IMG/VR virus record: IMGVR_UViG_3300032050_000004
Location: 124,001 to 188,000 of that record
Length of the DNA: 64,000 nucleotides
Direction: 5' to 3' (one strand)
Of this stretch, positions 16,701-63,875 are shown piece after piece. Under the pieces are notes generated by a model. That model did no database searches. It saw only the letters and a list, made by a program, of their open reading frames with translations, and was not told where the DNA came from. How positions within the stretch are numbered: the first letter of the stretch is position 1; each line of letters opens with the position of its first letter. Position numbers and translations under genes: made by a program.

Positions 16701-19700
16701 ATATCATCTCTGTTTTCAGCAGCAATTGCATCAAGATTTATTATCTTAATATTTTTATTGCTATTGAGTGCATTTTGTCTTGGCTCGACAGAGATCTGAT
16801 CTAAATCAATAAATTGCGGTTGATTGAAACTTAATAATGTTGTTCGAGATTGTGTTGCTAATCTCTCGATATCAATAATATTTTCAACATTTTTCTGTAA
16901 AATATCTGAACGATTTGCAGCAGCTATTGCATCTAAATTTATGATAGCAATTTCTGCATTTTTCGCTAATAAATCTTTTCTGTAAGGTGCAGCTTCTTTG
17001 TCTAAATCAGGAAATTGAGGTTGATTTTTTTCAGTTAATAATTTTCTTAAAATTTCCGCTTCTGCGTCTAGATTTATGCTAGATGCTATGTTTTTACTTA
17101 AAATGTTATTTCTTTGAACAGTTGCAGTAGCATCTAAATCAATTTGCTTAGTATCATTTTTAGCTAACGTATTAGTTCTAATAGGTAAAGCAATCGTATC
17201 AAGATCAATAAATTGATTTTGGTTGAATGATAATAAACTATTTCTTAAAGGTTCTGCATTAGCATCAAGATCAAATAATGTAATTTCGTTTTTACTTAAT
17301 AAATTCTTTCTTTCCGAACTAGCTAAAATATCTAAATCAATTAAACCATAAACATTTTTAGTAACTAGATTATTTCTAATTTCATTTGCAAGTCTATCTA
17401 GATCTATTACTTTAGTTTCGTTCTTTGATAAAAGTATACTTCTTTCTTGAGAAGCTAAATTATCTAGGTTTATTATTTCATAAACATTTCTTGTAAGTAA
17501 TGTGTTTCTTATCGATAGAGCTAAAGCATCTAAATCAAATTCTTTTATTTGATTTTTTTGAATTAGATCTTCTCTTTGACGTATAGCCAAAGTATCTAAA
17601 TCTATAAATTGAGCTTTATTAAAAGCTAATAATTTATTTCTTAATTTATTTGTATCCTTTTCTAGGTCGACTGGTAAAATTTCATTGAACTTCAATAAAG
17701 ATGTTCTATTAATAGTTGCCAGCTCATCCAGATCAAAAAGTTTATCTAAATTTTTTGATATTAATCTATTTCTGATTTCTGTAGCCTCTGCATCTAAATC
17801 AAATAATTTAAATACATTACTACTTAAAAGCAATTTTCTGTATTGTTCAGAAATTAAATCTAAATTTATTCTTGTTTCAACATTTTTTGATAATAAATCA
17901 TCTCTTTCTTGAGCTGAAATTTTATCAAGATCGATACTTTTACTTTCGTTTTTACTTAATGTTAAAGTTCTGATTTGTAATCCTAACTTATCCAAATCTA
18001 TAGGGGTATCAGAATTAGATGCAAGTAATTTATTTCTAATATCTTTTGCTTCAGCATCTAAATCAAAATATGTTATTTGATTTTTACTAACTAAATTTCT
18101 TCTAATATCTAATGCTAAGGCATCTAGATTGAATAGTTCTTCTACATTTTTATTAAGAAGAGAATTTCTAATGACACCAGCTTGTTCATCAAGTAAACCA
18201 TTTGCTTCAGTATATTTGTTTTTACTGATAAGGTTTTCTCTTTGAACATTTGATATTTTTTCAATATCAATTAAAGCATCGATGTTTTTAGAAATTAATC
18301 TATTTCTGACAGTCAGTGCTTCAAATTCAATATCTATTATTTTACCTTTGTTTTTACTTAATAGATTAGTTCTTGTAATCTCTATCAATTCATCCGTACC
18401 CACAGATGTATATCCGGGATCATTAGATTTTAAAAGGTTTTGTCTATATAAATTTGCAAGTTTATCTAAATCATTTAAAGAAGGTACATTTTTACTTTTT
18501 AATTCTTCTCTGAATTGTGAAGCATAAAGGTCTAGATCTAAACTTGCATATGATATGTTTTTTGAAAGAGAATTGGTTCTTGCTTTTAATGAAATTAAAT
18601 CTAAATTAGCTTCTACTACATCGTTCTTAGCTAATAAATTTCTTCTAATCTCTAAAGCATTAGTGTCTAATGTAGTATCAATTATTTTATTGATATCATA
18701 ATTTTTAGTTAGAAGATTAGTTCTGGTTATTCTAGCAATTGTTTCCAGTTCTTCCGAAAAATCTTCTTTATTTTTAGCTAAAAGATTTTTTCTCGGATTT
18801 AAAGCAATTTCCTCAAGAATTCTATTAAAAGTATCGTCATAATTATTTTTACCCAATAATTGTTCACGATAAGGAATAGCTGCTAAATCTAAATCAATTA
18901 ATTTTTTAAGATTTCTAGTGATAAGTCTTATTCTTTCTGGTGATGCAACTTCATCAAGACTAATATCTCCGAAATTCTGATTTTTAGAGAGTAATGGCAA
19001 TCTTATTTTACTGGATAATTCATCTAATTCACCGTTTGCTTCAGTATAATAATTTTTACTTAATAAATTAGATCTCTGATTTATAGATAAAATATCTATG
19101 TTAATTAAATTACTTACGTTTTTAGCAATTAGACTATTTCTAAGAGGTATTGCTTCCTCATCAATATCTTTATATACTGATTGATTTTTGGCTAGTAATT
19201 CTTTTCTATAGTTTTCTACTTCACTTTCTAAATTTATAGAATTTAAATTCTGATTTGTATTTAAAAGATTTAATCTCTGGATTTTTGCTTGTTCATCAAG
19301 ATCTATTAATTGATTTTGATTTCTTGCAAGTAAATTTTTTCTTAATATTTCAACCTCTTCAAAATTAGATACAATATCTACAAATTGATTATATTTTAAA
19401 ATATTATTTCTTTGTATTTCTCCTAATTTATCTAAATCAATTTCTTTATTTTGATTCTTACTCAATAAATTAAATCTTTGATTTATTGATAAATCATCTA
19501 TTCCAATTAAATTACTTACATTTTTTGAAATAAGCCTATTTCTACTAGATATGGCTTCTTCATCAAGATCAACAGTTTTAGTTTGATTTTTACTTAATAA
19601 ACTTGATCTTATTAGATCACTATTAACATCATTATCCGAAATAATTTCATTTTTACTAAGAAGAGCATTCCTATTATTTTCAGCAAGTTTATCTAAATCA

Positions 19701-21514: not shown

Positions 21515-24500
21515 TTAAGTTCTATTATAATTAGCCTCGACAATTATCTGCTGCAACTGTCTTCCGTTCAATTTCAAGTCTATTTGTATAGGTTTTATCT
21601 GAACAACTTGTGTTCCAGCAGTCTCTCTACCTCCTGCTACTGCACCCTCTCTTCTTGTGGTTGTTAAATCTGTTCCTAAGGCTGCAGCTGCTTTTGCTCT
21701 CTGTATTAAACTTATTTCATTATTACCCCCCGGTTTTGGAGCAGTAGCTACAGTTTTTAGTCTATCTTTTTCTTTGTTGTAATCAGCCATAGATTTGGTT
21801 GAAATTCCAAAGCTTGAAGAAACATTATTTAGAGATCTTCCTAATACATTCAAGCTAGATGCCATTGAAATTATACCTGAAGAAGCAGTCAAACCTCTGG
21901 TTCCAAATGATATTAACGTAGATGTTAATCCACTAATAGTTGGAAGGGCACTTGCGAATAAAGGCCAAGGAACTAATGAAAAAGATGTAAATCCACTTGT
22001 AGCTGATTTTAAACTCTTTCCTAAAATCATTAATGCAAATCCTGCAGCAATTAATTGAGGTGCTACTATTCCTATCATAGAAAACCTCATAATTGGTGCA
22101 ATTAAAGAATTAATTATAGGAACTTGAGCTAAAATACCATCAATTTTTAAATTAGCTATTGATGCTAACGATCTGAATATTCTTGTGACTCCGAGAACTG
22201 AGAAAATTGCTGGAATAATAAATGGTATCATCATAGACCATCTAACCAATCCAGAAATCATAGTACTCGCTGTAGCACTTAATAGACTAGCAAGTGTAAT
22301 CAATGGTACAGGAGATAGAGTAACTATACCTAATAAAATTCTGCTTAATTTTCTAACCCCTATAGCACTTACAATTGCCGGACCTGTAAAAAATGCAACT
22401 GCAGAAAATTTGATCAAACCTTTTATCAATCTACCAGATGTTGCAGTAAGAACTGTACCTAAACTTAATAAATTTTTGAAAAATATTGTTTGTATTTGAT
22501 TTATATTTTTTGTTAAACTTACAAGGCCTTTTGCAGTCAAAATTGCGGGTGCAACAAAAGGTGTAATTGATGAAAATTTGACTATTGCTTTTAACAAAGG
22601 AATACTTCTAAAACCTAGAACTGTTGACAATTGTAATAAATTTTTATTAAAAATTGTCTGTATTTGATTTATTACTTGTGTAAGAGTTACTAAACCTCTA
22701 GCAGCAGATATTGCTGGTGTTGTAACTGCTCTAATTCCTGCAAATTTAAATAGTGCTTTACCTAATTTCCAACTTGTAGAACTTGTAACACTAGCTAATT
22801 TATTTAGATTTTTTGCAACAATAGGTTGAATTTGATTTATAATCTTACTAAGTTGAACTAATCTGTTTGCAGATGTAATCGCTGGACTAACAAGTGCTCT
22901 TATTCCTAAAAATTTAACTAGACCTTTTACTATAGCACCGGAGGTATTATTTAAAACTGTTCCCAATTGCTGCATATTTTTTAATGGAACAAAAACAACT
23001 TGACTTAAAAATTTACTTATTGGAACTAAACCTCTTGCAGCTGATATAGCAGGTATTACAAATGGCATACCGGAGCTGAGTTTTTTAATTCCAACTACAA
23101 TTGAAGAAGATGTTGTTGCTAATACAAAGCCTATATTGAACATTTTAGCAAAATTAAGAGGAACTGTTCCTCTTAATAATCTTGTAATAAATACCAAAGA
23201 CTTTGCAGCAACAATTGCAAGTCCAGCATAATAACCAGCTCTACTGAAAGTTATGAACCCTCTGCTCAAATTAGGAGAAGCATAATATAAAGTATCACCT
23301 ATATTGATTAATTTTTTAGAATTAATATGTAGGGCATTTTTTAAACTATTTGTTACTGATACTATGCCTTTTGCTGCAAAAATAGCACCGATGACACTAG
23401 AACCCATTTTAGCAAATGTTTTAAAACCCGCAGTCAAAACTGGAGAAATAAATGCTAATGAAAATGCTATGTTGCTTAATTTTTTTGTATCTATTGGAAC
23501 AACCTGAGAAAGTTGCTTTGTAATAAATTTAACTCCTTCGGCTACTGCAATTGCTGGTAAAATTGGAACTGATGAAGCTGCAAACTTTGTTAAACCCCAA
23601 AAAAGTTTTCCAGAAGTTTTAGATAAAGTAGAGGCTAAATTTATCAAACTCGAAGCGTTTATCGCAGGCATAGATGATAAATTTCTGGAAATACTGTTGA
23701 TACCTTTGGCAACAACTACTGCAGGACCAATTACAGTTGTAATACCAGCAAATTTCCCTAAACCTTTAGTCAATTTCCAAGCAGTACTACTTAAAGTTGT
23801 TGCTAATTGTTTTAATGCACTTTGACTTACTACAGGTAAATTTGATAGTGTTTTTGTGATTTTCAATAAACTATTAGCAGCTTTTACAGCTCTATTTGCA
23901 AGAAATCCAGCTGCTGATAATTTTAGTAGACCTTTTGATATTGGTCCCATGGTCGAAGTCATCACACTAGCTATGTTCAATAATTTTCCCGCATTTATCG
24001 GAAGTGTCATTAATAATATAAATGTTACTCTTCTTAGACCGGAAGCTGCTTGTGCAGCTTTATTTGCAACAGATGCTGCATTACTTAATTTAGATAGACC
24101 TTTAGCAATTGGTTCGGAAGTATTTGATAAAATATATGCAAGAGTCAAAAATCTTGTTGGGGATAAAAATGGTACACCTCTCAAAAATGTTGCTGTTTTA
24201 AAAATATTAAGAGCAGCGTTGGATGCAAGTTTTGCAAATGGTGCTGTTAATCCAATTTTCTTTAATCCATTAGACAGAGGTCCAGACATCGTAGCCAAAG
24301 TAACTGCAGTAGTAATTAATTTTATTGGATTCAACATTGGAATTCCTGCAAGATATTTAGTAGCTTTTAAAATAAACAATGATGACATTGAGGCTAACAT
24401 TGCTACTGATGTCAGTAAAGATATTTTGAATAAACCTTTGGCCAAGGGAGTAGACATTGCTGATAACGTTAACGCAGTTGTCAATAATTTTACTGGACTC

Positions 24501-27500
24501 AAAAGTGGTATTTGATTTAATAGTCTAACAGTTTTTAGAATAAAAATTGAAGATATTGATGATAATGCAGCAACGGGACTTAATAATGCTATTTTTTTGA
24601 GTCCCATTGATAATGGTGTAGAAATTATAGAAAGAGTTATAGCGTTTGTAATTAAAATTCCGGGATTTAATACTGGGACTCTAGATAAAATATTTGTAAT
24701 TAATAAAATAGATTTAGCAGCTATCAATGCTGGTACAGCAAAAAATCCTATAAATCCTAATTTTTTCATACCTTTCGAAAATGCTTGAGCCGAAAGAGAA
24801 ATTGCAACTCCAGTCATCACCAACTTTACTGGATCTAGAGGAGTAACATTAGCAAGAAATTTAGTTATTATTGAAATAGATTTAGCTGCAATCATAGCGG
24901 GTATTGCTAAGAAACCAATGAATCCTAATTTTTTTAATCCTTTTGAAAATGCAGAAGAAGATAAACTCAAAGCATTAGCTGTATTTATCAAAATTGCCAT
25001 GTTCAATGGAGTAATTTTAGATAAAGAACTAGTTATACTAACCAAAGATCTAGCAGCATAAATTGCAGGTATTGCAAACACTCCTAATAACCCTAATTTA
25101 AATAAACTTTTTCCAAATTTACCAGATACGGTATTTAGTATTGAAGCGGTTGTTATTAAAATTGCAGCATTTAAAGGTGTGACTTTAGCAAGTGTTTTAG
25201 TTACTGTCAATATTCCAAACGCTGCTAATATTGCAAATGGAGTAAAAACGGAAAGTGCTCCGAGCTTGATTAAGCTTTTTGTAAAAGGCCAAGCAATTTT
25301 TGATAATACTGAAGATGTGACTATCAAAAATGCAGGATTCAACATTGGAACTGCCTTCAACATTTTTGTTACTCCTAAAATACCCGCAGCAGCTACTAAA
25401 GCTAATGGAGTAAATGCTGCTAATGGTTGTAATTTTAAAAATGCTTTTGTAAATGGCCAAACAACTTTAGAAACTGTTCCTGCAGTTGTAGTTAATGTTT
25501 TTGCATTAAGTGTAGGCACAGCTTTTAACATTTTTGTTACACCTAAAATTCCCAATGTTGCTAGTAACGCTAAAGGAGTAAGAACTGAAACTAATCCTAA
25601 TTTTAACATTGCTTTTGCAAACTTACCGGAAGTAGAAGCCATCGTTGAAGCTGTCATTCCCAAGTTTTTTGGGTTTAATACTGGTACATTATTTAATAAT
25701 CTAGAAATTAAATTTATTCCAGCTGCTGATACAACGCCTAAAACAACAAATGGACTAACCAAACCTAACTTTATAAGTCCAAAAATAAAAGATGCAGAAA
25801 CTGCTGCCAATGATTGACCAAATGCTTGCATTTTTTTAAGGTCAACAATTTTTACATCTGCTAACATTCTACTTATTAAATTAATTGCTCCAGCTGAAAC
25901 AATTGCTAGAACAGTGAAAGGACTTACTAAGCCTAATTTTATCAACCCTTTGATCATAGCAGAACCAACCTTGCCCATACTGTCACCAAAGTTTTGCATT
26001 TTTGCGAGATCAATTATTTTAATTCTTGATAATGCTTGTGAAATTATATTTATACTTACAGCAGAAGCCATAGCTAATACTGCAAATGGTGAAACCAAAG
26101 CCAATTTAACTAACCCTTTTATCATTGACATTGATATTAAAGCAAGACTTTGACCAAATTGACTTACTTTTTTCACATCAACAGCAGAAATATTTTTTAA
26201 TGCTACGGCAACAACCATCAAAGCACCAGCTGAAACCATTGCCAGTGCAGCAGGACCAGCTACCAAACCAAGTTTAGTAAGTCCCCAAGCAATAGAGCCC
26301 ATTGAATCTCCTATCTGAGAAATAATTTTTGGATTCACACCTTTTGCTGCACCTAATCCACGTAGAAAATATCCAAATGCAATCATTGCCGGAGCAGCAA
26401 TTAAACCTGCAGCTCCAAAAATTAATAATGCAGGAGAAATTATAACTAAAGCTGCTGCTAAAGCAATTAACCCAGCTGCACCTTTAAAAGTGGCTCCTAT
26501 ATTTTTACCCATAGATATAATAGCTGGAACCAATATAGAAAATCCTTTTGCTGCTAAATAAACTGAAGCTCCAAGCATTAACATAGCAGCACCTAGAGCT
26601 AACAACGGTATTGCAGCAATAGAACTTGCAGTAGCAAGAATATAAACCATAGCAACAAAACCACCCATAACTATTGCAATTGCACCTAATGCTGCTCCTG
26701 CATTTTTAGCATTATTGAATGAATTAACTAAAGTTGCGAAACCTGTTGCAGCAAATTGAATTCCTTTCCCAATTAATAGCATTGCGATTCCCAAGGCAAC
26801 AAAAGCTGCAGCTAAAGATAAAATTTGAGCAGGATTTATTTTTGAAAACTGTTGCAACATTGTTGGAGGCGTTTTCATTCCTTTCATTTTTCCGCCGATG
26901 TCTGGGGTTTGTGTAGTTACCTTACTTGCTAATGTTTCTGTAGCTTTTTTACTTGCACCACCACCAACACCAGCAAAGGCAGATTTTATTTGTGATCCTA
27001 AACCAGACAACATTTTTAGAGGTGAAGTAATTCCTCTAAATAAAATACCTGCAAATTTTGCCATTGCTGAAGGCCCAAACGTTAACATAAGGATACCACC
27101 TAACAAAGCCATTGCTTTAACCCATTTACCAGTTTCAGCTCCAAATACTTTATCAATAACATTGCCCACTCTAACGAAAATTGCTCTCAATTTATCAAGG
27201 GCATGTTTCAACATTTCTAAATAAGGTTGAAACATTGTGAATGTGGCTAATACCTCGTTAGCTAAATTATTTAATTTTTCTTCTAAGGCTTGTCTGCTCT
27301 TCGCAGCTTTCTCCATATTTTCAGCATCTGATTTTGATTTATTCATCATTGCTTGAATACTTCCCTTAGAAACATTTTTTAGATCTTGCATTCCCTCCAA
27401 CCCTTCAAATTTCCACTTGCCACCTTGTTTCACAGCTTTAGAAAGTAAAAAATCTTTTTCGTCATCACTCAATGCATTAAACACACCGGGTGGAATTGCC

Positions 27501-29032
27501 GCTTTTTTCGCAGCATCTGATAATCTTGAATTTATTCTATTTGTTACAGATTCTACATCTTCTCCTGATGCTTCAGCAATTTTTTGAATTTTCTGTCTAT
27601 CGATCATAGACAGTTGCAACTTACCATCCTTATTTAACTTTCCAATATCGGAAGTCATTTGGGTCATAAGCTTATCCATAGCTTCTGGACCATCTTGAGC
27701 AGCTTTCATTAAATCCATAAATGAAACCTGTGCTGCAGCACCACCAAGCAAACTCAAATCAGCTGATGCTTCAAGAGCTGCATTGATATCTAAAAATTTA
27801 TCTGAAGCATCTAATAATTTATTAATATCAGTGCCCATTTTTTCGGCTTTTGCTGCCATTCTAGCAAGTGATTCTTCACCAGCTTTGAATCCCATTCTAG
27901 CAAATCTTGGAAAAACATCTTGGAATTTTTTAGCTACAGCCGTTACATTAACTCCAAACCTTGTTGATGCTTTAGAAATATCTACAAAAGCTTTTCTTGC
28001 TTTTTCAGCATTAGCCCCATAAAACATCATTTGACCAGTCAATTGACCGACATTTTCTAATGCTATACCAGTTGCGTCTGACACTGCAGCAACTTGTTTT
28101 GCAGTAGCAGCTAAATTTTGAACGTTTGTTGATTTAGCGTATTCACCAATATTTTTTACTAATGTAAAAGCTTTTTCATTGTCTAAACCGAATTGGGCCC
28201 CATACTTTACAAGTTCAGACATTGAACTTGATGCTTTAGAAAAACCAGCAGTTGGAATCTGGAACTCTCTTTTTATATTAGATAATTTTTTATCAAAATC
28301 CATAAGATTTTGAATTATCTTACCAAACCCAATATAATTTAAAATATTGTCACCAATTTGTCTGAACAAATTGTTCCAATTCATTATAACTTTAGTTGTT
28401 TTTTGTGCTGCCGGTTCAAAGGATTCTAATTGTTGCCTAAATCTATTTGTTCCTTTATCTCCATCTCCTCCGGGTTTGAAATAATCTTTCATTCCCTGAA
28501 ATCCTTTTTTATCTCCTAGAAAATCACGGAGCCTCTTCATCCCTTCGTCTCCAAATTTCTTATAGAAAGTTGCAATATCTCCAGTCTTGAAAGCTTTTTG
28601 CATTTCATTACCCATTTCTGGGAATGATGCTTTAAAATCACTTATTAATGAATTTAAATTTATTTGAGCTTGTATATCTTTCGGATCTGGTAAAGCATTT
28701 CTAAAAGCTGAATTGAATTCTTCGCCAATACTAGCAGCAATTTCTGGAGCTGTAGCTTCAAGATCATCAAACATCGTAGCAATATCTCTTTTCGCTTGCT
28801 CGACTTCTACTTCAATTGTATCAAATGCCTGACTTAAACGCAGACCAAAGGCTTCTCCAACTTCATCCAAACCTCTGTTGAAATCCTCCATGGAAGCTTG
28901 AGTGTCTCTTGTACTTTTTTGAACTTTTCTTTGCTCACGTTCAAGACTTCTCAAAAGCTTTGCTTGTTCTTCTGTTAATGTACCAGCAGCTTTTAATTCT
29001 TTAATTAATTGTTTGACTTGATTAGCGTCCAT
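21515..29032 (-). CDS. Tail tape measure protein (probable)
   Basis: 2505 aa, helical Ala/Lys-rich N-terminus, hydrophobic repeats, typical C-terminal IQIDLKLNGRQL; lies upstream of the baseplate genes. Confidence 0.8.
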   Translation of the reverse strand: MDANQVKQLIKELKAAGTLTEEQAKLLRSLEREQRKVQKSTRDTQASMEDFNRGLDEVGEAFGLRLSQAFDTIEVEVEQAKRDIATMFDDLEATAPEIAASIGEEFNSAFRNALPDPKDIQAQINLNSLISDFKASFPEMGNEMQKAFKTGDIATFYKKFGDEGMKRLRDFLGDKKGFQGMKDYFKPGGDGDKGTNRFRQQLESFEPAAQKTTKVIMNWNNLFRQIGDNILNYIGFGKIIQNLMDFDKKLSNIKREFQIPTAGFSKASSSMSELVKYGAQFGLDNEKAFTLVKNIGEYAKSTNVQNLAATAKQVAAVSDATGIALENVGQLTGQMMFYGANAEKARKAFVDISKASTRFGVNVTAVAKKFQDVFPRFARMGFKAGEESLARMAAKAEKMGTDINKLLDASDKFLDINAALEASADLSLLGGAAAQVSFMDLMKAAQDGPEAMDKLMTQMTSDIGKLNKDGKLQLSMIDRQKIQKIAEASGEDVESVTNRINSRLSDAAKKAAIPPGVFNALSDDEKDFLLSKAVKQGGKWKFEGLEGMQDLKNVSKGSIQAMMNKSKSDAENMEKAAKSRQALEEKLNNLANEVLATFTMFQPYLEMLKHALDKLRAIFVRVGNVIDKVFGAETGKWVKAMALLGGILMLTFGPSAMAKFAGILFRGITSPLKMLSGLGSQIKSAFAGVGGGASKKATETLASKVTTQTPDIGGKMKGMKTPPTMLQQFSKINPAQILSLAAAFVALGIAMLLIGKGIQFAATGFATLVNSFNNAKNAGAALGAIAIVMGGFVAMVYILATASSIAAIPLLALGAAMLMLGASVYLAAKGFSILVPAIISMGKNIGATFKGAAGLIALAAALVIISPALLIFGAAGLIAAPAMIAFGYFLRGLGAAKGVNPKIISQIGDSMGSIAWGLTKLGLVAGPAALAMVSAGALMVVAVALKNISAVDVKKVSQFGQSLALISMSMIKGLVKLALVSPFAVLAMASAVSINIISQALSRIKIIDLAKMQNFGDSMGKVGSAMIKGLIKLGLVSPFTVLAIVSAGAINLISRMLADVKIVDLKKMQAFGQSLAAVSASFIFGLIKLGLVSPFVVLGVVSAAGINLISRLLNNVPVLNPKNLGMTASTMASTSGKFAKAMLKLGLVSVLTPLALLATLGILGVTKMLKAVPTLNAKTLTTTAGTVSKVVWPFTKAFLKLQPLAAFTPLALVAAAGILGVTKMLKAVPMLNPAFLIVTSSVLSKIAWPFTKSLIKLGALSVFTPFAILAAFGILTVTKTLAKVTPLNAAILITTASILNTVSGKFGKSLFKLGLLGVFAIPAIYAARSLVSITSSLSKITPLNMAILINTANALSLSSSAFSKGLKKLGFIGFLAIPAMIAAKSISIITKFLANVTPLDPVKLVMTGVAISLSAQAFSKGMKKLGFIGFFAVPALIAAKSILLITNILSRVPVLNPGILITNAITLSIISTPLSMGLKKIALLSPVAALSSISSIFILKTVRLLNQIPLLSPVKLLTTALTLSAMSTPLAKGLFKISLLTSVAMLASMSSLFILKATKYLAGIPMLNPIKLITTAVTLATMSGPLSNGLKKIGLTAPFAKLASNAALNIFKTATFLRGVPFLSPTRFLTLAYILSNTSEPIAKGLSKLSNAASVANKAAQAASGLRRVTFILLMTLPINAGKLLNIASVMTSTMGPISKGLLKLSAAGFLANRAVKAANSLLKITKTLSNLPVVSQSALKQLATTLSSTAWKLTKGLGKFAGITTVIGPAVVVAKGINSISRNLSSMPAINASSLINLASTLSKTSGKLFWGLTKFAASSVPILPAIAVAEGVKFITKQLSQVVPIDTKKLSNIAFSLAFISPVLTAGFKTFAKMGSSVIGAIFAAKGIVSVTNSLKNALHINSKKLINIGDTLYYASPNLSRGFITFSRAGYYAGLAIVAAKSLVFITRLLRGTVPLNFAKMFNIGFVLATTSSSIVVGIKKLSSGMPFVIPAISAARGLVPISKFLSQVVFVPLKNMQQLGTVLNNTSGAIVKGLVKFLGIRALVSPAITSANRLVQLSKIINQIQPIVAKNLNKLASVTSSTSWKLGKALFKFAGIRAVTTPAISAARGLVTLTQVINQIQTIFNKNLLQLSTVLGFRSIPLLKAIVKFSSITPFVAPAILTAKGLVSLTKNINQIQTIFFKNLLSLGTVLTATSGRLIKGLIKFSAVAFFTGPAIVSAIGVRKLSRILLGIVTLSPVPLITLASLLSATASTMISGLVRWSMMIPFIIPAIFSVLGVTRIFRSLASIANLKIDGILAQVPIINSLIAPIMRFSMIGIVAPQLIAAGFALMILGKSLKSATSGFTSFSLVPWPLFASALPTISGLTSTLISFGTRGLTASSGIISMASSLNVLGRSLNNVSSSFGISTKSMADYNKEKDRLKTVATAPKPGGNNEISLIQRAKAAAALGTDLTTTRREGAVAGGRETAGTQVVQIKPIQIDLKLNGRQLQQIIVEANYNRT
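22100..26300 (-). repeat. 56-aa hydrophobic/basic repeat inside the tape measure, roughly 25 copies
   Basis: KLGLVSPFTVLAIVSAGAINLISRMLADVKIVDLKKMQAFGQSLAAVSASFIFGLI counted as 56 aa; neighbouring units align without gaps. Confidence 0.85.
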
Positions 29033-34064: not shown

Positions 34065-34823
34065 TTATTTTTTACCTTTAGAAGGTGATGTTGTTACAGG
34101 TGCGTGATTTGGTAATATATGATGACGACGTGTTCCAGAAACTCTTATTGAAGGGTGGGGTAACATTCTTTCTTCGTCTATCTCTTTTTTATTTTTTTTA
34201 TTAATTATAGCTTTTTGCAATTCATCTGGAAGTTCTGATTGTTTACCTTTAAGGGCAGGATCTTCATCGTATTTATCTGAAAATTCTAATTCTTCTTCTA
34301 AATCTTCATCAACTTCATCTAATGTTTTTGACACAGGTGAATGATATGGTAAATTTTCTTTATTTCTTCCCGGAGTTCTTGTTTTGTCAGGAAATGCTAA
34401 CATTCTCTCTTCCATATTAGCCCCTTTAGCACAACAATCATCACACCAAGTTTTTGCTTCATCTTCTGTGTCAAAATATTTATTATCGTCTACCTCACTA
34501 TTTTTGAAAACAATTGCTAAAAATTTATCAGAAGCATTTATTCCATCTCTTGGAGAGATTATTTTACTATCATATGAATCCATATCTTCCATATCAAAAT
34601 TCTCATCTTGATCTTCGGCTAATTTCTTTGCTTGGGCTGTAGCTATAGCGTAAGTTTTTGGAGTTTTTCCATACTTAGACTTAAGAGCTTTTACCAATTC
34701 TTCTTTCTTTTCTTCTTCGGCAGGTGTCAGGGGCCTTTCCTGAATATATCCGTCTCCGGGCATTTCAGACATAATTTTCCTAACTTCTTCTTTAATTAAG
34801 GATCTGATATCAATTTTTGCCAT
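34065..34823 (-). CDS. Putative head-internal modular protein
   Basis: N-terminal IRSLIKEEVRKIMSE tag, multiple [LIM]xE sites, and duplicated ERML..P..R..G.....LP.H.PV modules. Confidence 0.6.
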   Translation of the reverse strand: MAKIDIRSLIKEEVRKIMSEMPGDGYIQERPLTPAEEEKKEELVKALKSKYGKTPKTYAIATAQAKKLAEDQDENFDMEDMDSYDSKIISPRDGINASDKFLAIVFKNSEVDDNKYFDTEDEAKTWCDDCCAKGANMEERMLAFPDKTRTPGRNKENLPYHSPVSKTLDEVDEDLEEELEFSDKYDEDPALKGKQSELPDELQKAIINKKNKKEIDEERMLPHPSIRVSGTRRHHILPNHAPVTTSPSKGKK

Positions 34824-52343: not shown

Positions 52344-52769
52344 ATGAAAATATCTAAATCTGATTTGGAACAATTAATTAAAGAAGAAGCCATCAAAATG
52401 TTCCAAATTCAAAAACTTGAAGAAGCACAAAACAAAATTAATAATGAACTTCAATTAATTTCTGAGGGCAAAAAGAAAATGTCAGACGAAGAATTGAACG
52501 AACTTATAGCAGGTTTAAAAAGTGTTTTTGGTGCTGGGGCTAAAAAAGCTGGAGAAGCAATTGCCGGGGCTGGCGAAAAAGCAAAAGAATTAGGTGGTAA
52601 AATAGCATCTAAATATAAAGAAGGTGAGCAGACAGCAAAAATTGCTAAAATGGAAAAGCAAAGAGATGAAATAGTTGTTAAAATAAAACAATTAGCTGAT
52701 CAATATAAACAATTGACTGGTAAAAGATATTCTATGATTGGACAGAAAATTTCTCCAGTTGTAGCTTAA
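52344..52769 (+). CDS. Putative head-internal protein
   Basis: N-terminal KISKSDLEQLIKEE tag with LEE/ISE/LNE sites; has its own promoter motif and terminator. Confidence 0.6.
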   Translation: MKISKSDLEQLIKEEAIKMFQIQKLEEAQNKINNELQLISEGKKKMSDEELNELIAGLKSVFGAGAKKAGEAIAGAGEKAKELGGKIASKYKEGEQTAKIAKMEKQRDEIVVKIKQLADQYKQLTGKRYSMIGQKISPVVA

Positions 52770-53509: not shown

Positions 53510-54163
53510 ATGAATAATCTCGATAATAAATATATTATTTCTGAATTTTTGGCAATCGATCCAGATGTACAGAAAATAAATGAGGCTATTGCTAAAAATG
53601 AGCCTATAATCGTTCCATGTATTTTACAAAAAGCCAACACTCTGAACAGAAATGGTAGAGTTTATCCATTCGATATTTTAAAAAGAGAGGTAGATAAATA
53701 TCAGCAATTAGTAAAAGAGAGAAGTGCAATGGGTGAGTTGGATCACCCGGATTCTGCTGTTATTTCCCTAGCAAATGTATCTCACATTGTAACAGAAATG
53801 TCATGGAAAGGTGAGGTTTTATATGGAAAAATTCAGATCGCAGATACACCTGCAGGCGACACTGTGAAAGGTCTTTTAAAAAGTGGTATCAAATTAGGTA
53901 TTTCATCTCGTGGTGTAGGTTCTGTAAAGAAAAACAGAGAAGATCAAGATGTTGTTCAGGAAGATTTTGAATTAATTGGTTTTGATATTGTTTCATCACC
54001 TTCAACACCCGGAGCTTATTTATTTAAGGAATCTAAGCAGTGGGGTATGAAAAAATTAATTGATTCTGATACTAAATTAATTAAGACAGATGAGGTTAAA
54101 AATAAAATTAAAAACCTAAAAAATAGTTTGAGTAATTTATCTAAAGATAGTTTCTGGAACTAA
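53510..54163 (+). CDS. Prohead core protease (T4 gp21-like)
   Basis: NRNGRVYP, GELDHP, VSH, GISSRGVGS, and FDIVSSPSTPGA. ATG 53510 preferred over TTG 53468 because the promoter motif lies between them. Confidence 0.95.
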   Translation: MNNLDNKYIISEFLAIDPDVQKINEAIAKNEPIIVPCILQKANTLNRNGRVYPFDILKREVDKYQQLVKERSAMGELDHPDSAVISLANVSHIVTEMSWKGEVLYGKIQIADTPAGDTVKGLLKSGIKLGISSRGVGSVKKNREDQDVVQEDFELIGFDIVSSPSTPGAYLFKESKQWGMKKLIDSDTKLIKTDEVKNKIKNLKNSLSNLSKDSFWN

Positions 54164-54257: not shown

Positions 54258-55769
54258 ATGTTAAATAAAAACATCATAAAAGATGCATTAGCTGATGCTA
54301 AAGAAATAGAGAAGTTTGCTATTGAGCAAGCTAAAAAGTCTTTAGAAGAAGCATTGATGCCTCAAATAGAAAAGGCTATTCAAGAAAGCCTACAAGAAAA
54401 TAAATCAGAACAATTTATTTCTGAAGAATCGGAAGTTAATAATATTAATGAAAATATTATAACATCTGAAAATTTAATTTCTGAAAATACAAATTCAAAA
54501 AATATACAAGAAATGTACAACGAAAAAGAAGAAACAAACGAAGAATTATATGAGGTTGAAGGTCTTTTTGAAGATGAAACTGCCCAAGAACCTGCTGAGG
54601 CTTCGTTAGAGTCTAAACTCGATGCTATGGCTGCAAAGCTTGATACATTAATAGCAGCTGCTCAAGGTAGCGAAGAAACTTCTGCCGAAGGTGAAGTTGA
54701 AGTTGTAGACGATGAAGCTGCTGCTCCCGCAGAAGCTCCTGCTGCTGCTCCAGCTGAAGCACCAGCTCCTGCAGAAGCTCCGGCTCCTGCTGCACCAGCA
54801 CCAGCACCTGCTGAACAACCTACCGTTACAGAAGATACTATGTTCGAAATCGAAATGGAAGAAGATATGGAAGAAGGTCTTTTTGAAATGGAAGAAGATA
54901 TGGAAGAGGGTGATAAAGTTTATGAAATAAATGTTGAGGAAGATATGGAAGAAGAAGGTTGGAATAAAGTTGAAGAAGATATGGAAGAAGGTATGTATGA
55001 AATCAATTTAGAAGAAGATATGGAAGAAGAAGGTATGTATGAAATTGAAATGGAAGAAGATATGGAAGAAGGAGAAGAAGGTGTTGATCCGAAAACAGGA
55101 TTACCACTTCCTCCAAAAGAATTTGGTGGAATTAAAGGTGGAATGTTTGGAGAAGACATGGAAGAAGGAATGTTTGAAATTGAAATGGAAGAAGACATGG
55201 AAGAAAATACCATGCAAAATTTAGTAAATACACATAGAGCAAAAGAAAGAGGTAAAAGACAACCGGGATATGTTTCTCCTGCATCTGTAGCTTCAATCAA
55301 TGAATCTAAGAAAATAAAAGCTCAATATGAGTCTAAAGTAGACGAGCTTATAAAGGAAAACGCTAGTTTGAAAAACGTGATCAAAAATTACAAGTCGAAT
55401 TTGAAAGAATTTGAAAATTCATTTGTAGAATTAAAATCACAACTTAATGAAATGCAGATTTTCAATGGAAAATTAGCTTATGCAAATAAGCTTTTGACCA
55501 AAGGAGGATTGACAAATGACGAGAAAATTAGAATAGCTGAGGAATTTGATAAGTGTGCAACTGTTGAAGATGCAAAAAAACTTTACAACAAAATCATCAG
55601 TGAAAACACCTTCTCTTCAAAAAACAATTCTACGGATAAATTGAAATCTGTAAAGCCAAGCACGGCTGTTCAAAATCTTTCTGAAAATAAAACTGAAAAG
55701 TTATTTGAAAGTGAAGAGAGAAGAAGAATGAGAATGCTCGCTGGTATCGTAAAACCAATAAATGAATAA
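54258..55769 (+). CDS. Prohead scaffold/core protein (gp22-like)
   Basis: Lies between protease and capsid genes; very acidic, coiled-coil C-terminus, ends RMRMLAGI. Confidence 0.8.
   Translation: MLNKNIIKDALADAKEIEKFAIEQAKKSLEEALMPQIEKAIQESLQENKSEQFISEESEVNNINENIITSENLISENTNSKNIQEMYNEKEETNEELYEVEGLFEDETAQEPAEASLESKLDAMAAKLDTLIAAAQGSEETSAEGEVEVVDDEAAAPAEAPAAAPAEAPAPAEAPAPAAPAPAPAEQPTVTEDTMFEIEMEEDMEEGLFEMEEDMEEGDKVYEINVEEDMEEEGWNKVEEDMEEGMYEINLEEDMEEEGMYEIEMEEDMEEGEEGVDPKTGLPLPPKEFGGIKGGMFGEDMEEGMFEIEMEEDMEENTMQNLVNTHRAKERGKRQPGYVSPASVASINESKKIKAQYESKVDELIKENASLKNVIKNYKSNLKEFENSFVELKSQLNEMQIFNGKLAYANKLLTKGGLTNDEKIRIAEEFDKCATVEDAKKLYNKIISENTFSSKNNSTDKLKSVKPSTAVQNLSENKTEKLFESEERRRMRMLAGIVKPINE
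54715..55206 (+). repeat. APAEAPA tract followed by about 9 copies of (xEIxx)EEDMEEG
   Basis: Recurrent GAAGAAGA(T/C)ATGGAAGAAGG at the DNA level. Confidence 0.85.
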
Positions 55770-55785
55770 AAAAAAATAACGAAAA

Positions 55786-57405
55786 ATGTCTGAATTATTA
55801 AACAGCGGACAAGTTGGTATGACCGTATTACGCAACTTGTCTGAACAAAGAAAACAAATCGTTAAGAACTGGGAAAACTCAGGTCTTCTCGAAGGTATTG
55901 CCGGTCAAAAAAAAGCTAACATCGCTCAATTGTTAGAGAACCAAGCATCTCACATGCTTAATGAGGTAACTCTAGATAGTTCTGCAGGTCGTTTCGACAC
56001 TGTTGCATTTCCGATGGTAAGACGTATCTTCTCAAGATTACTTGCTTCTGAAATCGTATCAGTTCAACCTCTTGCTTTACCTTCTGGTTTGTTATTCTAT
56101 ATGGACGCTCAAGTATCTTCTGATAAAGTAGCTCCTTATTCTATAGCAAATTCTGGTGGTGGTTCTGGTCCTACATTCCCTAACAAATCTGCTTACGAGC
56201 GTTTCTATGACAATCGTGGATATGATGCATCTTGGGGTGCTGCAACTCAGCGTGTAGGTTCTGCAATCAGCATCGGTTCTGGTTCTACTACAACTGGTTT
56301 GATTGCTACGGCTGTAACATTAAGCTCTAATTTTGATGTAACTCTTAATCAGTCTTACACTTCTTTAGTACTTTCTGCTAATACAGCTATTGCTTACAAC
56401 GGTGTGGCTTTATTTGCTGCAGGTCAAACAGGTGTTACATTCTACTCTAATTTACAGACTTATGGTGCTGAATTAGTACAGAGTAACACTCCGGGTAACG
56501 TGAACAACATCTATAACATTGTTATCGATTTACGTCCTGCTCCAACTTCTACTGCTGCTTATTCATGGGTACAATCTGGATTAACTGCAGGTGTTGGTGG
56601 TGTAGGTGCTGGTATCATCCTTACTCCGATGTTCTACACTTACAACACGATTGAGGCTAGTCCAAACATGTCTGAATTAACTCTTCGTTTCTCTTCTGTA
56701 ACTGTAAACTCAATTACAAGAAAAATGAGAGCACATTGGACACCTGAATTAGCTCAAGATTTAGAAGCATACCACTCAATTGATGCTGAGGCTGAATTGA
56801 CAGCTTTATTGTCAGAAGAAGTTGCTGCTGAAATCGATCGTGAAATCATCCGTGATCTTGTTATCGGTGCTATGTTCGAAGCTCGTTGGGATTACCAAGG
56901 CTTACGTGACAACGTAAACTTCTTCGGTACTCAGAAAGACTGGAACCAAACTCTTATCACTCGTATCAACGAAATTTCTGCCCAGATCCACAAAGCTACC
57001 CTTCGTGGTGGTGCTAACTGGGTTATCTGTTCTGCAGAAGCTGGTGCGATCTTCGATGATCTTGAGTACTTCCATGTAGATTCTTCTGCATCACCTGAGA
57101 CTGAAAAGTATAACTTAGGTATGGAAAAAATCGGTAACTTAGGTAACCGTTATGTAGTGTACAAAGATCCTTACATGCCTGCTAACATCGTGTTGGTTGG
57201 ACACAAAGGTAATACCTTCCTTGAGGCTGGTTACGTGTACGCTCCTTACATTCCTCTTCAATTAACTCAGACGATCTACGATCCGAATGACTTTACACCT
57301 CGTAAAGGTATCATGACTCGTTATGCGAAGAAGATGATCAACAACCGTTTCTATGGTGTGATCTACCTTGACAATCTTAACACTTATACTCAGGTATATA
57401 GCTAA
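55786..57405 (+). CDS. Major capsid protein (T4 gp23-like)
   Basis: AQLLENQ, VSVQPLALPSGLLFY, WTPELAQDL.AYHSIDAEAEL, EIDREII, YAPYIPL, and PRKGIMTRY; strong high-expression codon bias (CGT, AAC, ATC, TTC). Confidence 0.97.
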   Translation: MSELLNSGQVGMTVLRNLSEQRKQIVKNWENSGLLEGIAGQKKANIAQLLENQASHMLNEVTLDSSAGRFDTVAFPMVRRIFSRLLASEIVSVQPLALPSGLLFYMDAQVSSDKVAPYSIANSGGGSGPTFPNKSAYERFYDNRGYDASWGAATQRVGSAISIGSGSTTTGLIATAVTLSSNFDVTLNQSYTSLVLSANTAIAYNGVALFAAGQTGVTFYSNLQTYGAELVQSNTPGNVNNIYNIVIDLRPAPTSTAAYSWVQSGLTAGVGGVGAGIILTPMFYTYNTIEASPNMSELTLRFSSVTVNSITRKMRAHWTPELAQDLEAYHSIDAEAELTALLSEEVAAEIDREIIRDLVIGAMFEARWDYQGLRDNVNFFGTQKDWNQTLITRINEISAQIHKATLRGGANWVICSAEAGAIFDDLEYFHVDSSASPETEKYNLGMEKIGNLGNRYVVYKDPYMPANIVLVGHKGNTFLEAGYVYAPYIPLQLTQTIYDPNDFTPRKGIMTRYAKKMINNRFYGVIYLDNLNTYTQVYS

Positions 57406-58233: not shown

Positions 58234-59235
58234 ATGGACAGAATTAATTTAAAGGAATTAGATTTTTTAATTAAAAATCATTTAGACCAACTAAATGAAG
58301 CTTTAATTGCTGGTGAAAATATTGATTCTGGGGATTTTATCGTAAAAAACTCAGAAAAAGATAAATTAACTGGTGAATTATCTAATGATCTTAAATACCT
58401 TTTTAAAATAACAGAATTTACAAAGTCTGGAAAAGCTTTAGTTATTAAACCGGATCAATTACAGAAATGGAGAAATTCAACTAATGTGGATAGATCTTTA
58501 ATGTCTAAAGAAGTAAATCTTAATGATTATGATGTTGTAAATGTAGAAGATGAATATTTAAATTTTCCAGAATCATTACTAGATGAAGGAAAGGTAAAAT
58601 CTTCCAAAACTAAATCAGGAAGAAAAGTACCCGGAAAATATCTTACAAAAGATAAAGCTGCAATGAAAGGTGAAATTGAAAGAGTTTCTAAATTAAAATC
58701 TGATGACCCTTCTGCATATGGAAAATGGGAAGCAGATTATAAAGCAAGAAATACAAAATCAGGCAAACCTCATAAAACAAAAAAAAGTGCTGCTACTATA
58801 GCTTATGAGAAAAAGTTTGGTAAAAAAAATGAAAACATAGATATGAAAAACGAATTAATAACTGAAGATATTGACAAAGCTTTGGCAAATAAAGCAAAAG
58901 CATCAGGAATCTCTAAGTCTATTTTAAAAAGAGTATATTCGAAAGGAGCAGCTGCTTGGAAAAGTGGACATCGTCCCGGTGTTTCTCAACAACAATGGGC
59001 TATGGGTCGCGTAAATTCATTTATCACTGGAAGTGGTGGTGCAAGAAAAGCTGATGCAGACCTTTGGGCAAAAGCCAAAAAATCCAAGAAAAGAAAAAAT
59101 GAGAATCTTGAAGAGGAATTGTTAAGAAGAAAAATACGAGAAATTATAAGCGAAGAATATTTCACCAAAGAAGAATTGGATGAATTATATCCTATGTTAG
59201 TAGGTGAGGACGAAATTAATAATGAAGAGGAATAA
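58234..59235 (+). CDS. Putative head-associated protein with DUF5824-like domain
   Basis: ALANKAKASGIS..ILKRVYSKGAAAWKSGHRPG..QQQWAMGRVNSF; tag-like helices at both ends. Confidence 0.6.
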   Translation: MDRINLKELDFLIKNHLDQLNEALIAGENIDSGDFIVKNSEKDKLTGELSNDLKYLFKITEFTKSGKALVIKPDQLQKWRNSTNVDRSLMSKEVNLNDYDVVNVEDEYLNFPESLLDEGKVKSSKTKSGRKVPGKYLTKDKAAMKGEIERVSKLKSDDPSAYGKWEADYKARNTKSGKPHKTKKSAATIAYEKKFGKKNENIDMKNELITEDIDKALANKAKASGISKSILKRVYSKGAAAWKSGHRPGVSQQQWAMGRVNSFITGSGGARKADADLWAKAKKSKKRKNENLEEELLRRKIREIISEEYFTKEELDELYPMLVGEDEINNEEE

Positions 59236-61514: not shown

Positions 61515-61587
61515 TTTATTAAATTATATACTAATAAATAATTTGTTTTTTTAATTTTAATAAATTATAGATTATTTATATTTAACC

Positions 61588-62760
61588 ATGGAAATAAGAG
61601 AATTAATAAAAAAAGTAATTAAAGAGTCTTTTTTAACAGAAAATGAAGTTAAAAGAATAGATTTTAGCTACCCTTTACCTGATGATTTAAATAAATTGAA
61701 GAATTATTTCGATGAGAATAATTTTGAACTTTTTGTAGTAGGTGGAGCCGTGCGTGATATGATCTTAGGTAAGGAACCTAAAGACATAGATTTAGTATCT
61801 GATGCTACTCCTGATGACGTAAAAAGGATTTTACCAGATGAATATAGAATAATTCCCAAAGGAGAAGCTTTTGGTATCCTTCAAATAATTACTCCAGAAG
61901 GTGGTGATTACGAGATTGCTCGTTATCGTGAGGATATTGGAAAAAAAGATGGAAGAAGACCAGATTCGGTCAAATTTTCTACTATTGATTCAGATGCTTT
62001 AAGAAGGGATTTAACAATTAATGCTCTATATTACGATATAAATAAAAATCAAATTATAGATTTTGTTAATGGTTATGAAGATATTCTCAAAAGAAATATT
62101 AAAACTGTTGGTAAAGCAGAAGATAGATTTGAAGAGGATCGATTAAGAATATTGAGAGCATTTAGATTTGCAGCTAGATTTAATTCAAACTTAGATCAGG
62201 ATATAATAGAGGCTTTAAGAAAAAATAATTCTCTAAAAGGGGTATCTGAAGAGAGAATTAGAGATGAATTCCTTAAAGGTATAAAAAGTGCTCAATCTGT
62301 TGTAAAATTCCTTACCGATTTAGAAAATTATGGATTACTAAAACAAATTTTAGATGATTTGAATTATAGTCAATCTGAATTCGTAGAATCAAAAGATTAT
62401 ATCGTGTTATTGGCTAATTTACTTAAAAATAATCCAGTTCATAAAATTCAAACTATTCTTAATAATCTTAAATATACAACTGATGAAATAAGAAAAATTA
62501 TTTTCCTTGTTTTGTTTTTAAATTTCGATCCTGAATCTGTATATAATTTTAAAGTAAAAGAAAATGTTTCGAAAATATCTCCAGAAGAATTAAAGGAATT
62601 TGCCAGAATAAATTCTATAAATTCAAATATGGTAGATAAATTCATAGATTTTAAATTATCTGTTTCAGGGGATGAACTTTTACAGAAGGGATTCAAGGGA
62701 GCATCATTAGGAAAAGAAAAAGAAAGATTAGAGACTGTTAACTTCCTTGATACTCTTTAG
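61588..62760 (+). CDS. cca: Class II tRNA nucleotidyltransferase (CCA-adding enzyme)
   Basis: VGGAVRD..LGKEPKDIDL, DGRRPDSV loop, RRDLTINAL, and EDRLRILRAFRF; no HD domain and no obvious poly(A) polymerase signature. Confidence 0.88.
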   Translation: MEIRELIKKVIKESFLTENEVKRIDFSYPLPDDLNKLKNYFDENNFELFVVGGAVRDMILGKEPKDIDLVSDATPDDVKRILPDEYRIIPKGEAFGILQIITPEGGDYEIARYREDIGKKDGRRPDSVKFSTIDSDALRRDLTINALYYDINKNQIIDFVNGYEDILKRNIKTVGKAEDRFEEDRLRILRAFRFAARFNSNLDQDIIEALRKNNSLKGVSEERIRDEFLKGIKSAQSVVKFLTDLENYGLLKQILDDLNYSQSEFVESKDYIVLLANLLKNNPVHKIQTILNNLKYTTDEIRKIIFLVLFLNFDPESVYNFKVKENVSKISPEELKEFARINSINSNMVDKFIDFKLSVSGDELLQKGFKGASLGKEKERLETVNFLDTL

Positions 62761-62781
62761 TTTTTTCGACTATTTATTTAC

Positions 62782-63798
62782 ATGAAAAAGGATAAAATTC
62801 CCGGAGGCAAAGCAAAAGGCAAATCTTTAAAAGATATTGCGATTATGCACTGTAAATCTGATTCAAAAAACAAATCAGATGAAAGAAAAATTGAAAAAAT
62901 GTTAGACCATTTAAAGTTGGAATTAAAAAAAGGGATTAAAACTGAATTGGAACATACAACCAGTGAAGAATTTGCCAAAGAAATAGCTATGGATCATTTA
63001 TATGAAGATCCAAAATATTATACAAAACTTTTAAAAATTGAAGAAATGAAAAAAACAAAAAAAATAAACATCAACGATATATCTGAAATGGTTAAGAAAG
63101 CTCTTAATGAAGAATTTGTTGGTGGTGTAAATTATGATAATGTTTTAGCAACTGAACTAAAAGAAAAAGTTGGTGATTTAAGCAAATTAACTCCTTATGT
63201 TTTAGAACTAGGTAATGAAATTCAATCAGATTCATCTGGTAAAATTCATGTTTATGATGAGGGAAAAAAAGTTAAGATATTCAACAATATTGATGACTTT
63301 TTAAAAGGTATCAAATACGGTCCTGTTAGAATTACCGAAGAAGATTCTTCAATGCCACATAAAGATCATGAAGCTATGATGGCAAAAGGAGAAATCAGAG
63401 ATATGGTTAAAAATGCAAAAGAAGTTTATAAAATGATTCAACCCGGTGATGAACTTCCCGGATGGATTTCTGCTTATATTACTTTAGCTTCAGATTATAT
63501 GCATAGCATCGCTGAATACATGACTGAAAAACATAGTGGTGGTGAAGAACTAACTGAAGATACAGAAGATGCACCAAAGAAATTAACAATGGATCAATTT
63601 TGTGAATGGTTAGGTTTGCCAACAGATAAAGTTCAATTAGGAATTGAAATTGCAAAGGTTTCAGACCCGGATGGAGCATACACTCACTTACAGGATATGG
63701 GTGAAGATGAAGCAGCGGAAGCAATAGAAGCCATATATTTTGAACATGGTTCTCTTAAAGAAGCAATTGCTGCTTGTAAAGAAGATTTAGGCATTTAA
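62782..63798 (+). CDS. Putative head-associated modular protein (DUF5661-like N-terminal module)
   Basis: GIKTELEHT....AKEIAMDHLYEDPKYYTKL module, then further modules separated by IEE/LNEE/ITEE/LTE. Confidence 0.6.
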   Translation: MKKDKIPGGKAKGKSLKDIAIMHCKSDSKNKSDERKIEKMLDHLKLELKKGIKTELEHTTSEEFAKEIAMDHLYEDPKYYTKLLKIEEMKKTKKININDISEMVKKALNEEFVGGVNYDNVLATELKEKVGDLSKLTPYVLELGNEIQSDSSGKIHVYDEGKKVKIFNNIDDFLKGIKYGPVRITEEDSSMPHKDHEAMMAKGEIRDMVKNAKEVYKMIQPGDELPGWISAYITLASDYMHSIAEYMTEKHSGGEELTEDTEDAPKKLTMDQFCEWLGLPTDKVQLGIEIAKVSDPDGAYTHLQDMGEDEAAEAIEAIYFEHGSLKEAIAACKEDLGI

Positions 63799-63818: not shown

Positions 63819-63852
63819 AACCATAGTTTTTTATTAAACTATGGTTTTTTTT
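63819..63852 (+). terminator. Rho-independent terminator
   Basis: AACCATAGTTT/AAACTATGGTT stem and T-run. Confidence 0.75.
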
Positions 63853-63875
63853 ATTTAAATAATATCTTTATATTA

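Follow-up and report, generated by a model that had tools for sequence, protein, structure and literature searches.

The 64,000-nucleotide (nt) stretch of virus record IMGVR_UViG_3300032050_000004 analysed here, referred to as the window, carries near its right end a gene for a predicted CCA-adding tRNA nucleotidyltransferase, which begins with a short N-terminal leader and is preceded by a promoter-like TATTTAT element. The window comprises bases 124001-188000 of a single 222,069 bp contig with a G+C content of 29.3%, and the virus record is rated 87% complete. Near-identical DNA is present in lake and freshwater metagenomes; no near-identical match was found in the phage collection. Coordinates refer to the window unless marked as genome positions. 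At the locus lie:

61573 to 61579, + strand: promoter-like TATTTAT of the CCA gene, separated from its ATG by 8 nt (ATTTAACC)
61588 to 62760, + strand: predicted class II tRNA nucleotidyltransferase of the CCA-adding type, 390 amino acids (aa), Pfam PF01743 and PF12627
61588 to 61641, + strand: leader ('tag') at the N-terminus, residues 1-18, forming an amphipathic helix whose core is I7-K-K-V10-I11-K-E13 (profile and shuffle tests, AlphaFold2)
61633 to 61641, + strand: leader/enzyme junction L16-T17-E18, a candidate prohead-protease site (junction conservation; L/I-x-E gp21 motif, PMC9026906)

The open reading frame (ORF) of the enzyme begins MEIRELIKKVIKESFLTE, with PLPDDL at residues 29-34. 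Pfam places the PolyA_pol head domain (PF01743) at residues 48-171 (E 4e-35) and an RNA-binding domain (PF12627) at residues 202-258. The best NCBIfam match is CCA tRNA nucleotidyltransferase NF009814 (183.9 bits, cut-off 290), followed by PcnB TIGR01942 (170.4 bits, cut-off 305.65). Since both scores lie under their cut-offs, the protein is a member of the family whose subfamily is not fixed by sequence score. The catalytic motifs GGAVRD, DxD, RRD, and EDxxR do not vary among 45 aligned relatives. Residues G52 G53 A54 V55 R56 D57, D66, and D68 of motif A are invariant or nearly so, while R139 R140 D141 (motif B) and E183 D184 ... R187 (motif D, nucleotide-selecting) are strictly conserved. 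The AlphaFold2 model reaches a mean predicted local distance difference test (pLDDT) score of 91 and, as compared by Foldseek over its full length, displays the head-neck-body-tail fold of solved CCA enzymes, with template-modelling (TM) scores of 0.70-0.74 to 6QY6, 1MIV, and 8CBM, compared to a lower 0.52-0.54 for the bacterial poly(A) polymerase structures 3AQK, 3AQL, and 3AQM. We regard the ORF product as a tRNA nucleotidyltransferase of the CCA-adding type, whose exact specificity is predicted. An earlier sequence-only reading of this DNA had arrived at the same enzyme type, which is borne out by Pfam, the best NCBIfam match, the motifs, and the fold; its placement of TATTTAT 8 nt before the ATG (61573-61579) and of PLPDDL from residue 29 was correct as written.

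The leader contains three L/I-x-E sites, IRE5, IKE13, and LTE18. AlphaFold2 predicts a helix from residue 2 to 15, a drop in pLDDT to 45 over residues 11-20, and an enzyme body above 90 from residue 21 onward, and in this model the leader helix is detached from the enzyme body. Cellular enzymes lack such an extension: in 66 cellular homologues from species genomes, 22-31 residues precede GGxVRD compared to 51 in the phage enzyme, and the leader occurs in none of the 66. Moreover, solved cellular CCA enzymes align only from residue 26-44 of the phage enzyme onward. The leader is thus specific to the phage enzyme, as had been proposed.

Among the relatives, the boundary between leader and core is sharply defined. 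A set of 119 distinct N-termini of the CCA clade, at 42-100% identity, was assembled from metagenome proteins and viral contigs; of these, 101 carry a leader of at least eight residues. In 96 of these 101 leader-bearing relatives, [LIVM]-x-E is located exactly on the leader/core boundary. A further 17 relatives are leaderless and begin at this boundary (e.g., MEKRIIF... or MSEKRIKF...); therefore, an enzyme trimmed at LTE18 would be colinear with those that are naturally leaderless.

The leader belongs to a family that extends across the genome. Of the 277 ORFs, 42 show the class-A pattern, hydrophobic-x-x-hydrophobic-[ILV]-x-E, within residues 1-27, compared to 11.9 ± 3.3 (maximum 23) in 1000 shuffles within each N-terminus. 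Further, an N-terminal profile retrieves 25 ORFs at 8 bits or more, as opposed to 0.2 per internally shuffled proteome. When the profile is built without the CCA protein, the CCA leader still scores 6.8 bits, a range in which shuffled proteomes give about 0.1 match. The claim that the leader is common to many other genes thus holds by both profile and shuffle tests, with approximately 30 carriers. Class-A carriers share no DNA repeats and their codons vary at conserved positions, indicating that the leader is conserved as protein. Two other origins were considered and rejected: a repeated DNA cassette, as the median length of the longest substrings in common is 9 nt versus 8 in controls, and a composition artefact, by the shuffles within each N-terminus. 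A second form, class B, is present in eight proteins starting ...(R/K)(M/L)x(E/K)LAG(I/L)(I/L)xE. Pfam and PHROGs assign no function to nearly all leader-bearing proteins, the exception being one with a GH108 muramidase domain (genome 24756-25886, − strand, L002). This protein is distinct from the endolysin at genome 102513-103109 and could be a virion-borne wall hydrolase.

The TATTTAT element upstream of the CCA gene represents a promoter class of its own. TATTTAT is present within 35 nt upstream of 67 of the 277 ORFs and is strand-specific, with 30 forward versus 12 reverse-complement copies before codirectional genes. Logo and spacing of 71 copies define the genome-wide class (A/C)TATTTAT(T/A)NNNA, in which information is confined to the heptamer, its two flanks, and an A at +11, corresponding to a single -10-like element with no -35 box. 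The A four bases past the heptamer occurs in 58 of 70 cases and, judged from this conservation, probably marks the transcript start; for the CCA gene, the predicted start is A at 61584, leaving a 4-nt 5' leader on the mRNA. In 11 late-class genes, TATTTAT lies exactly 4 nt before the ATG (e.g., window 62771-62784). Here, the conserved A coincides with the A of the start codon, and leaderless late mRNAs are therefore predicted. One of these genes directly follows the CCA gene:

62771 to 62777, + strand: second TATTTAT, 4 nt before the next (DUF5661) ATG
62782 to 63798, + strand: DUF5661 protein, 338 aa, next gene downstream of the CCA gene (Pfam PF18905), with an internal leader-like stretch ISEMVKKALNEEF

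TATTTAT lies ahead of the protease-scaffold-capsid operon, of the genes for a virion structural protein and the endolysin, and of two giant ORFs, and is found upstream of just 1 of the 47 ORFs in the first 20 kb. The promoter of the CCA gene, described as late-type in the sequence-only reading, is confirmed as a member of the class that drives head genes and endolysin and not the early block, 'late' being deduced from this gene content. Across the genome, leader and late promoter are strongly paired: among 30 leader genes, 25 have TATTTAT in the 35 nt upstream of the start, as compared to 42 of 247 others (Fisher p=4e-13). The 85%-identical orthologue L013 keeps the element upstream of its CCA gene, and L017 (59%) and L015 (58%) have it at other spacings, in L015 as the variant TATTTAC. 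Across viral contigs, TATTTA[TC] is located upstream of 12 leader-bearing versus 2 leaderless CCA genes, while TAnnTTTG lies upstream of 10 leaderless ones; these counts are not phylogenetically independent. An assignment of TATTTAT as host sigma-A box was rejected, as it misfits TAnnTTTG, which is rare before ORFs of this genome in a simple upstream scan. The T4 late consensus TATAAATA is not enriched, the phage motif being (A/C)TATTTAT(T/A). In four lake RNA runs, the metatranscriptome contigs cover approximately 380 nt of a 5.8-kb stretch and 0 nt of the CCA gene, and consequently yield neither a transcript start site nor an expression reading for it.

The window further contains a head module of the T4 type, with the following genes:

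52344 to 52769, + strand: 141-aa protein with a leader, directly upstream of the protease, matching the T4 gp67/gp68 core proteins in position
53510 to 54163, + strand: T4 gp21-type prohead protease (Peptidase_S77, PF03420; Pfam E 7e-30; phrog_207 E 3e-54) with TATTTAT upstream
54258 to 55769, + strand: scaffold (prohead core) protein, located between protease and capsid genes, whose last 16 residues in translation hold the class-B motif RRMRMLAGIV
55786 to 57405, + strand: major capsid protein, Gp23 type (PF07068; Pfam E 1e-72)

The N-terminal region of the capsid protein contains L-L-E and L-N-E sites that are conserved in the four orthologues compared. The scaffold C-terminus, ...RRRMRMLAGIVKPINE, is the same motif as in the class-B leaders (LAG[IL] census). 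The same scaffold ending is found in the orthologue of the 85% relative and in the cultured Flavobacterium phage immuto (...SRWQKLAGIIK; L018 18692-19933). The immuto genome likewise carries class-A and class-B leaders on other proteins, including a small leader-bearing gene between portal and protease genes. Immuto, whose host is Flavobacterium sp. LMO8, lacks a CCA gene; proteins 186, 187, 190, and 198 are among those with a leader. Moreover, the S77 protease is present in all three complete genomes with a leader-bearing CCA enzyme. As separate observations on the scaffold protein, its LAG(I/L) tip holds across two phages whose capsid proteins are just 43% identical, and it contains long acidic repeats of the MEEDMEEG type.

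In an independent complete relative of 310 kb (G004, 310,542 bp), a different N-terminal family takes this place, MKI(L/I)ITExQLK..., enriched with 35 carriers versus 15.6 ± 3.6, which is tied to the same promoter (p=3e-5). In G004, a gene cluster around the CCA gene at 263-285 kb carries the MKI(L/I)ITExQLK... family, suggesting that leaders diverge by phage lineage. The CCA enzyme of contig L065 has a leader of the same style.

Capsid targeting with proteolytic removal of the leader is the best-supported mechanism, to which we assign about an even chance, and a late cytoplasmic enzyme is its main rival. The CCA enzyme would be made as a precursor, in which residues 1-18 form a detachable amphipathic helix ending in L-T-E. 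The gene would be transcribed from the late-class promoter together with the head genes, and the leader would bind the assembling scaffold core or shell, like the capsid-targeting sequence (CTS) of T4, thereby enclosing the enzyme in the prohead. Subsequently, the gp21-type S77 protease would cut after L/I-x-E, giving rise to a mature enzyme that starts about where the leaderless relatives start. At the next infection, the enzyme would exit the head with the DNA and rebuild or complete the 3' CCA of tRNAs before phage gene expression. Binding, packaging, cleavage, ejection, and biological purpose of the CCA enzyme are what we infer, the rebuilding of tRNA ends on entry following from the enzyme class, the ligase neighbour described below, and general knowledge of tRNA-directed defences. 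As to the sequence-only reading as a whole, the enzyme, the phage-specific common leader, and the promoter class stand, while loading into the head has gained circumstantial support from the S77 protease, the L/I-x-E at the junction, and the scaffold-tip match.

The proposed route follows the capsid-targeting principle of T4 in a varied form and with an unusual cargo. In T4, gp21 cleaves after L/I-x-E (PMC9026906). Targeting depends on residues 4 and 7 of the T4 CTS and processing on residues 8 and 10 (PMC9026906), and the ten N-terminal residues of IPIII suffice to bring proteins into the head (PMC9026906; PMC3012670). T4 IPII and IPIII start MKTYQEFIAE, with the layout hydrophobic-x-x-hydrophobic-hydrophobic-x-E as in the class-A core. 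The scaffold gp22 of T4 starts MLKEQLIAE; thus, the cargo signal resembles a scaffold terminus in T4 as well. As in T4 IPI-III and Alt, where it is a propeptide, a short N-terminal peptide is common to otherwise unrelated, fast-evolving proteins, its layout ends in L/I-x-E, and a gp21-type S77 protease, a scaffold core, and a Gp23 capsid protein are present in the phage. Unlike the T4 CTS, the phage leader is longer (approximately 15-20 aa) and occurs in two or more classes. It is also carried by approximately 30 proteins instead of a handful, its cargo includes a tRNA enzyme, and it is known here from sequence alone.

Similar principles operate in other shells. The giant phages phiKZ, 201phi2-1, and SPN3US deliver enzymes together with their DNA, and many proteins inside their heads are trimmed of propeptides by a gp21-like protease that cuts after Glu (PMC9026906). 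Their cleavage motifs are different, and a shared short N-terminal tag is not known from these phages; our phage, with its head module of the T4 type, shows no sign of the phiKZ/201phi2-1/SPN3US lineage. Encapsulins, too, use a short terminal peptide to bring diverse enzymes into their HK97-fold shell. By analogy only, the class-B peptide of the phage, which equals the terminal motif of its own scaffold, resembles these cargo peptides; encapsulins are not viruses, however, and their peptide has a different sequence and is not proteolytically removed. CCA enzymes of Caulobacter, Agrobacterium, Brevundimonas, and Lak phages belong to the same family (28-37% identity). As most of their alignments start at about residue 30 of our enzyme, most of them are without this leader. 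The literature search returned nothing usable on virion proteomes containing a CCA enzyme or on related Bacteroidota jumbo phages, and the 'moraphage' paper mentions neither CCA nor leaders.

More generally, though at somewhat less than even chance, T4-like jumbo phages of freshwater and marine Bacteroidota may share a cargo-loading system. Their leaders, some of them mimicking the scaffold, would load dozens of fast-evolving proteins including the CCA enzyme and be trimmed by S77, with leader families that are lineage-specific and co-vary with a dedicated late promoter. If true, the phage would bring ready-made translation-repair capacity into the cell. The enzyme would represent a new kind of injected effector, where known ones counter restriction or modify RNA polymerase, and would be aimed at the growing list of tRNA-damaging host defences. 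Leader, L/I-x-E, and late promoter would together form a rule that predicts virion-delivered proteins in uncultured T4-like jumbo phages; in this phage genome, it flags approximately 30 proteins of unknown function. Mimicry of the scaffold tip would, in addition, provide a concrete basis for how capsid-targeting signals work.

Several observations speak against loading into the head. The phage is known from lake metagenomes alone, and approximately 30-40 cargo proteins are many for a T4-like head. The class-A leader of the CCA enzyme could be matched to no head protein, the match to the scaffold N-terminus being insignificant at 2.9 bits. Against the T4 CTS, the leader profile leaves IPII and IPIII unscored and gives IPI only negative scores; no sequence homology is detectable. 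Further, the class-A motif is not N-terminal in three proteins, as it lies near the C-terminus of a DUF5824 protein, internally in the DUF5661 protein, and, in a protein of 293 aa (genome 49713-50594), at residue 217; consequently, the motif is not strictly an N-terminal one. The first of these is encoded in the window:

58234 to 59235, + strand: DUF5824 protein, in which the class-A motif (LLRRKIREIISEEYF) lies close to the C-terminus

The S77 protease is also present in two of five fragments with a leaderless CCA enzyme, and since the leaderless contigs are all fragments, its presence does not separate them from leader-bearing ones. Searches with T4 gp55 and Pfam Sigma70_r2, in which single-sequence sensitivity is low, match nothing in the 87%-complete genome; given that no gp55-like sigma factor was found, the label 'late' reflects gene content only. 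Finally, at least four and up to six leader-bearing CCA relatives lie behind the host-type TAnnTTTG (two variant leaders were scored as leaderless by the pattern), showing that leader and late promoter are not strictly coupled.

An ordinary cytoplasmic enzyme of the late phase, which we consider unlikely but a serious alternative, would mature phage tRNAs and keep tRNA ends intact as the host decays. The leader would then serve another common job, such as recruitment to assembly or replication sites, binding of a shared chaperone or partner, or turnover regulated by the head protease without packaging. The phage has three clustered tRNA genes (Arg-TCT, Met-CAT, and Asn-GTT; genome 193094-193392, − strand, i.e., L008 6094-6392), none of which encodes the 3' CCA; host CCA enzymes, on the other hand, would presumably already serve these tRNAs. 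CCA genes are common in large phages and mostly leaderless there, leaderless and host-promoter versions exist within the same CCA clade, and packaging of the CCA enzyme is itself inferred, all of which speaks for a cytoplasmic role. What such a role leaves unexplained is the copying of the scaffold C-terminal tip by class B, the position of L/I-x-E exactly at the junction in 95% of relatives, and the use of the head-gene promoter by leader genes.

Decidedly improbable is an enzyme that is not a full CCA-adding one and instead adds A or CC or tails RNA as a poly(A) polymerase, in which case tRNA end repair would name the wrong substrate. One catalytic core is common to the whole family, and the CCA (183.9 bits) and PcnB (170.4 bits) scores are close and both below their cut-offs. 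The full-length fold, however, is nearer to CCA enzymes than to poly(A) polymerase (TM 0.70-0.74 versus 0.52-0.54), EDxxR, RRD, and an R-R-P segment are present, and the neighbouring ligase is of the T4 Rnl1 type, a tRNA-repair enzyme in T4.

Very improbable is a leader that is a by-product of translation-start constraints, by which short or absent 5' leaders favour A/U-rich first codons (Lys, Ile, Glu, Asn, Arg): the 11 late-class genes with the motif 4 nt before the ATG, for which leaderless mRNAs are predicted, and a slight enrichment of Lys, Ile, and Leu in the first 27 residues are in line with it, but shuffling within the N-terminus removes the signal (42 versus 11.9 ± 3.3), helical periodicity is kept via conservative replacements and varied codons, and the motif also occurs at C-termini and is kept by relatives in a GC-richer genome (L015).

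The CCA gene forms a short unit with the DUF5661 gene, an order that is kept in L013, and the unit ends at a hairpin:

63819 to 63856, + strand: intrinsic-terminator-like hairpin and T run, end of the CCA-DUF5661 unit

Two genes downstream of the CCA gene, just past the window end, a T4 Rnl1-type RNA ligase is encoded (genome 188562-189602, − strand), which has neither leader nor TATTTAT element. The ligase stays near the CCA gene, one or two genes off, in the relatives L013, L015, and L017 (85%, 58-59% identity). This adjacency resembles the Rnl1/Pnkp tRNA repair of T4; unlike in T4, an AAA_33-type kinase as in Pnkp was not found in the 87%-complete genome. In five other contigs (L050, L084, L085, L087, and L088), the CCA frame is extended at its 5' side by a domain that resembles a P-loop kinase or a cytidylyltransferase. 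These extended frames in viral contigs are possible fusions of tRNA-end enzymes, several of which begin with a leader-like helix.

Elsewhere in the window, a further leader-bearing gene is located on the opposite strand:

34065 to 34823, − strand: leader-bearing late gene, 252 aa, starting MAKIDIRSLIKEEV...

Three giant ORFs, all on the − strand, are found at 8155-13374 (1739 aa), 13715-21460 (2580 aa), and 21515-29032 (2505 aa). The 2580-aa and 2505-aa ORFs have the late-class TATTTAT motif and no Pfam match, while the 1739-aa ORF contains a C-terminal Amidase_2 cell-wall hydrolase domain.

Outside the window, the first 20 kb of the genome use a separate element, AAACCTTT-N13-(C/A)GTATTG, with 26 copies, all at genome 1.1-18.7 kb (L001). 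Each copy of AAACCTTT-N13-(C/A)GTATTGAT lies directly upstream of a small ORF, and a single match to a loose pattern outside this range, at 142 kb, is a poor fit. The element misfits the Bacteroidota sigma-A consensus, so that one may ask what polymerase or factor transcribes the first genes. One delivered in the virion would fit a phage that loads many proteins.

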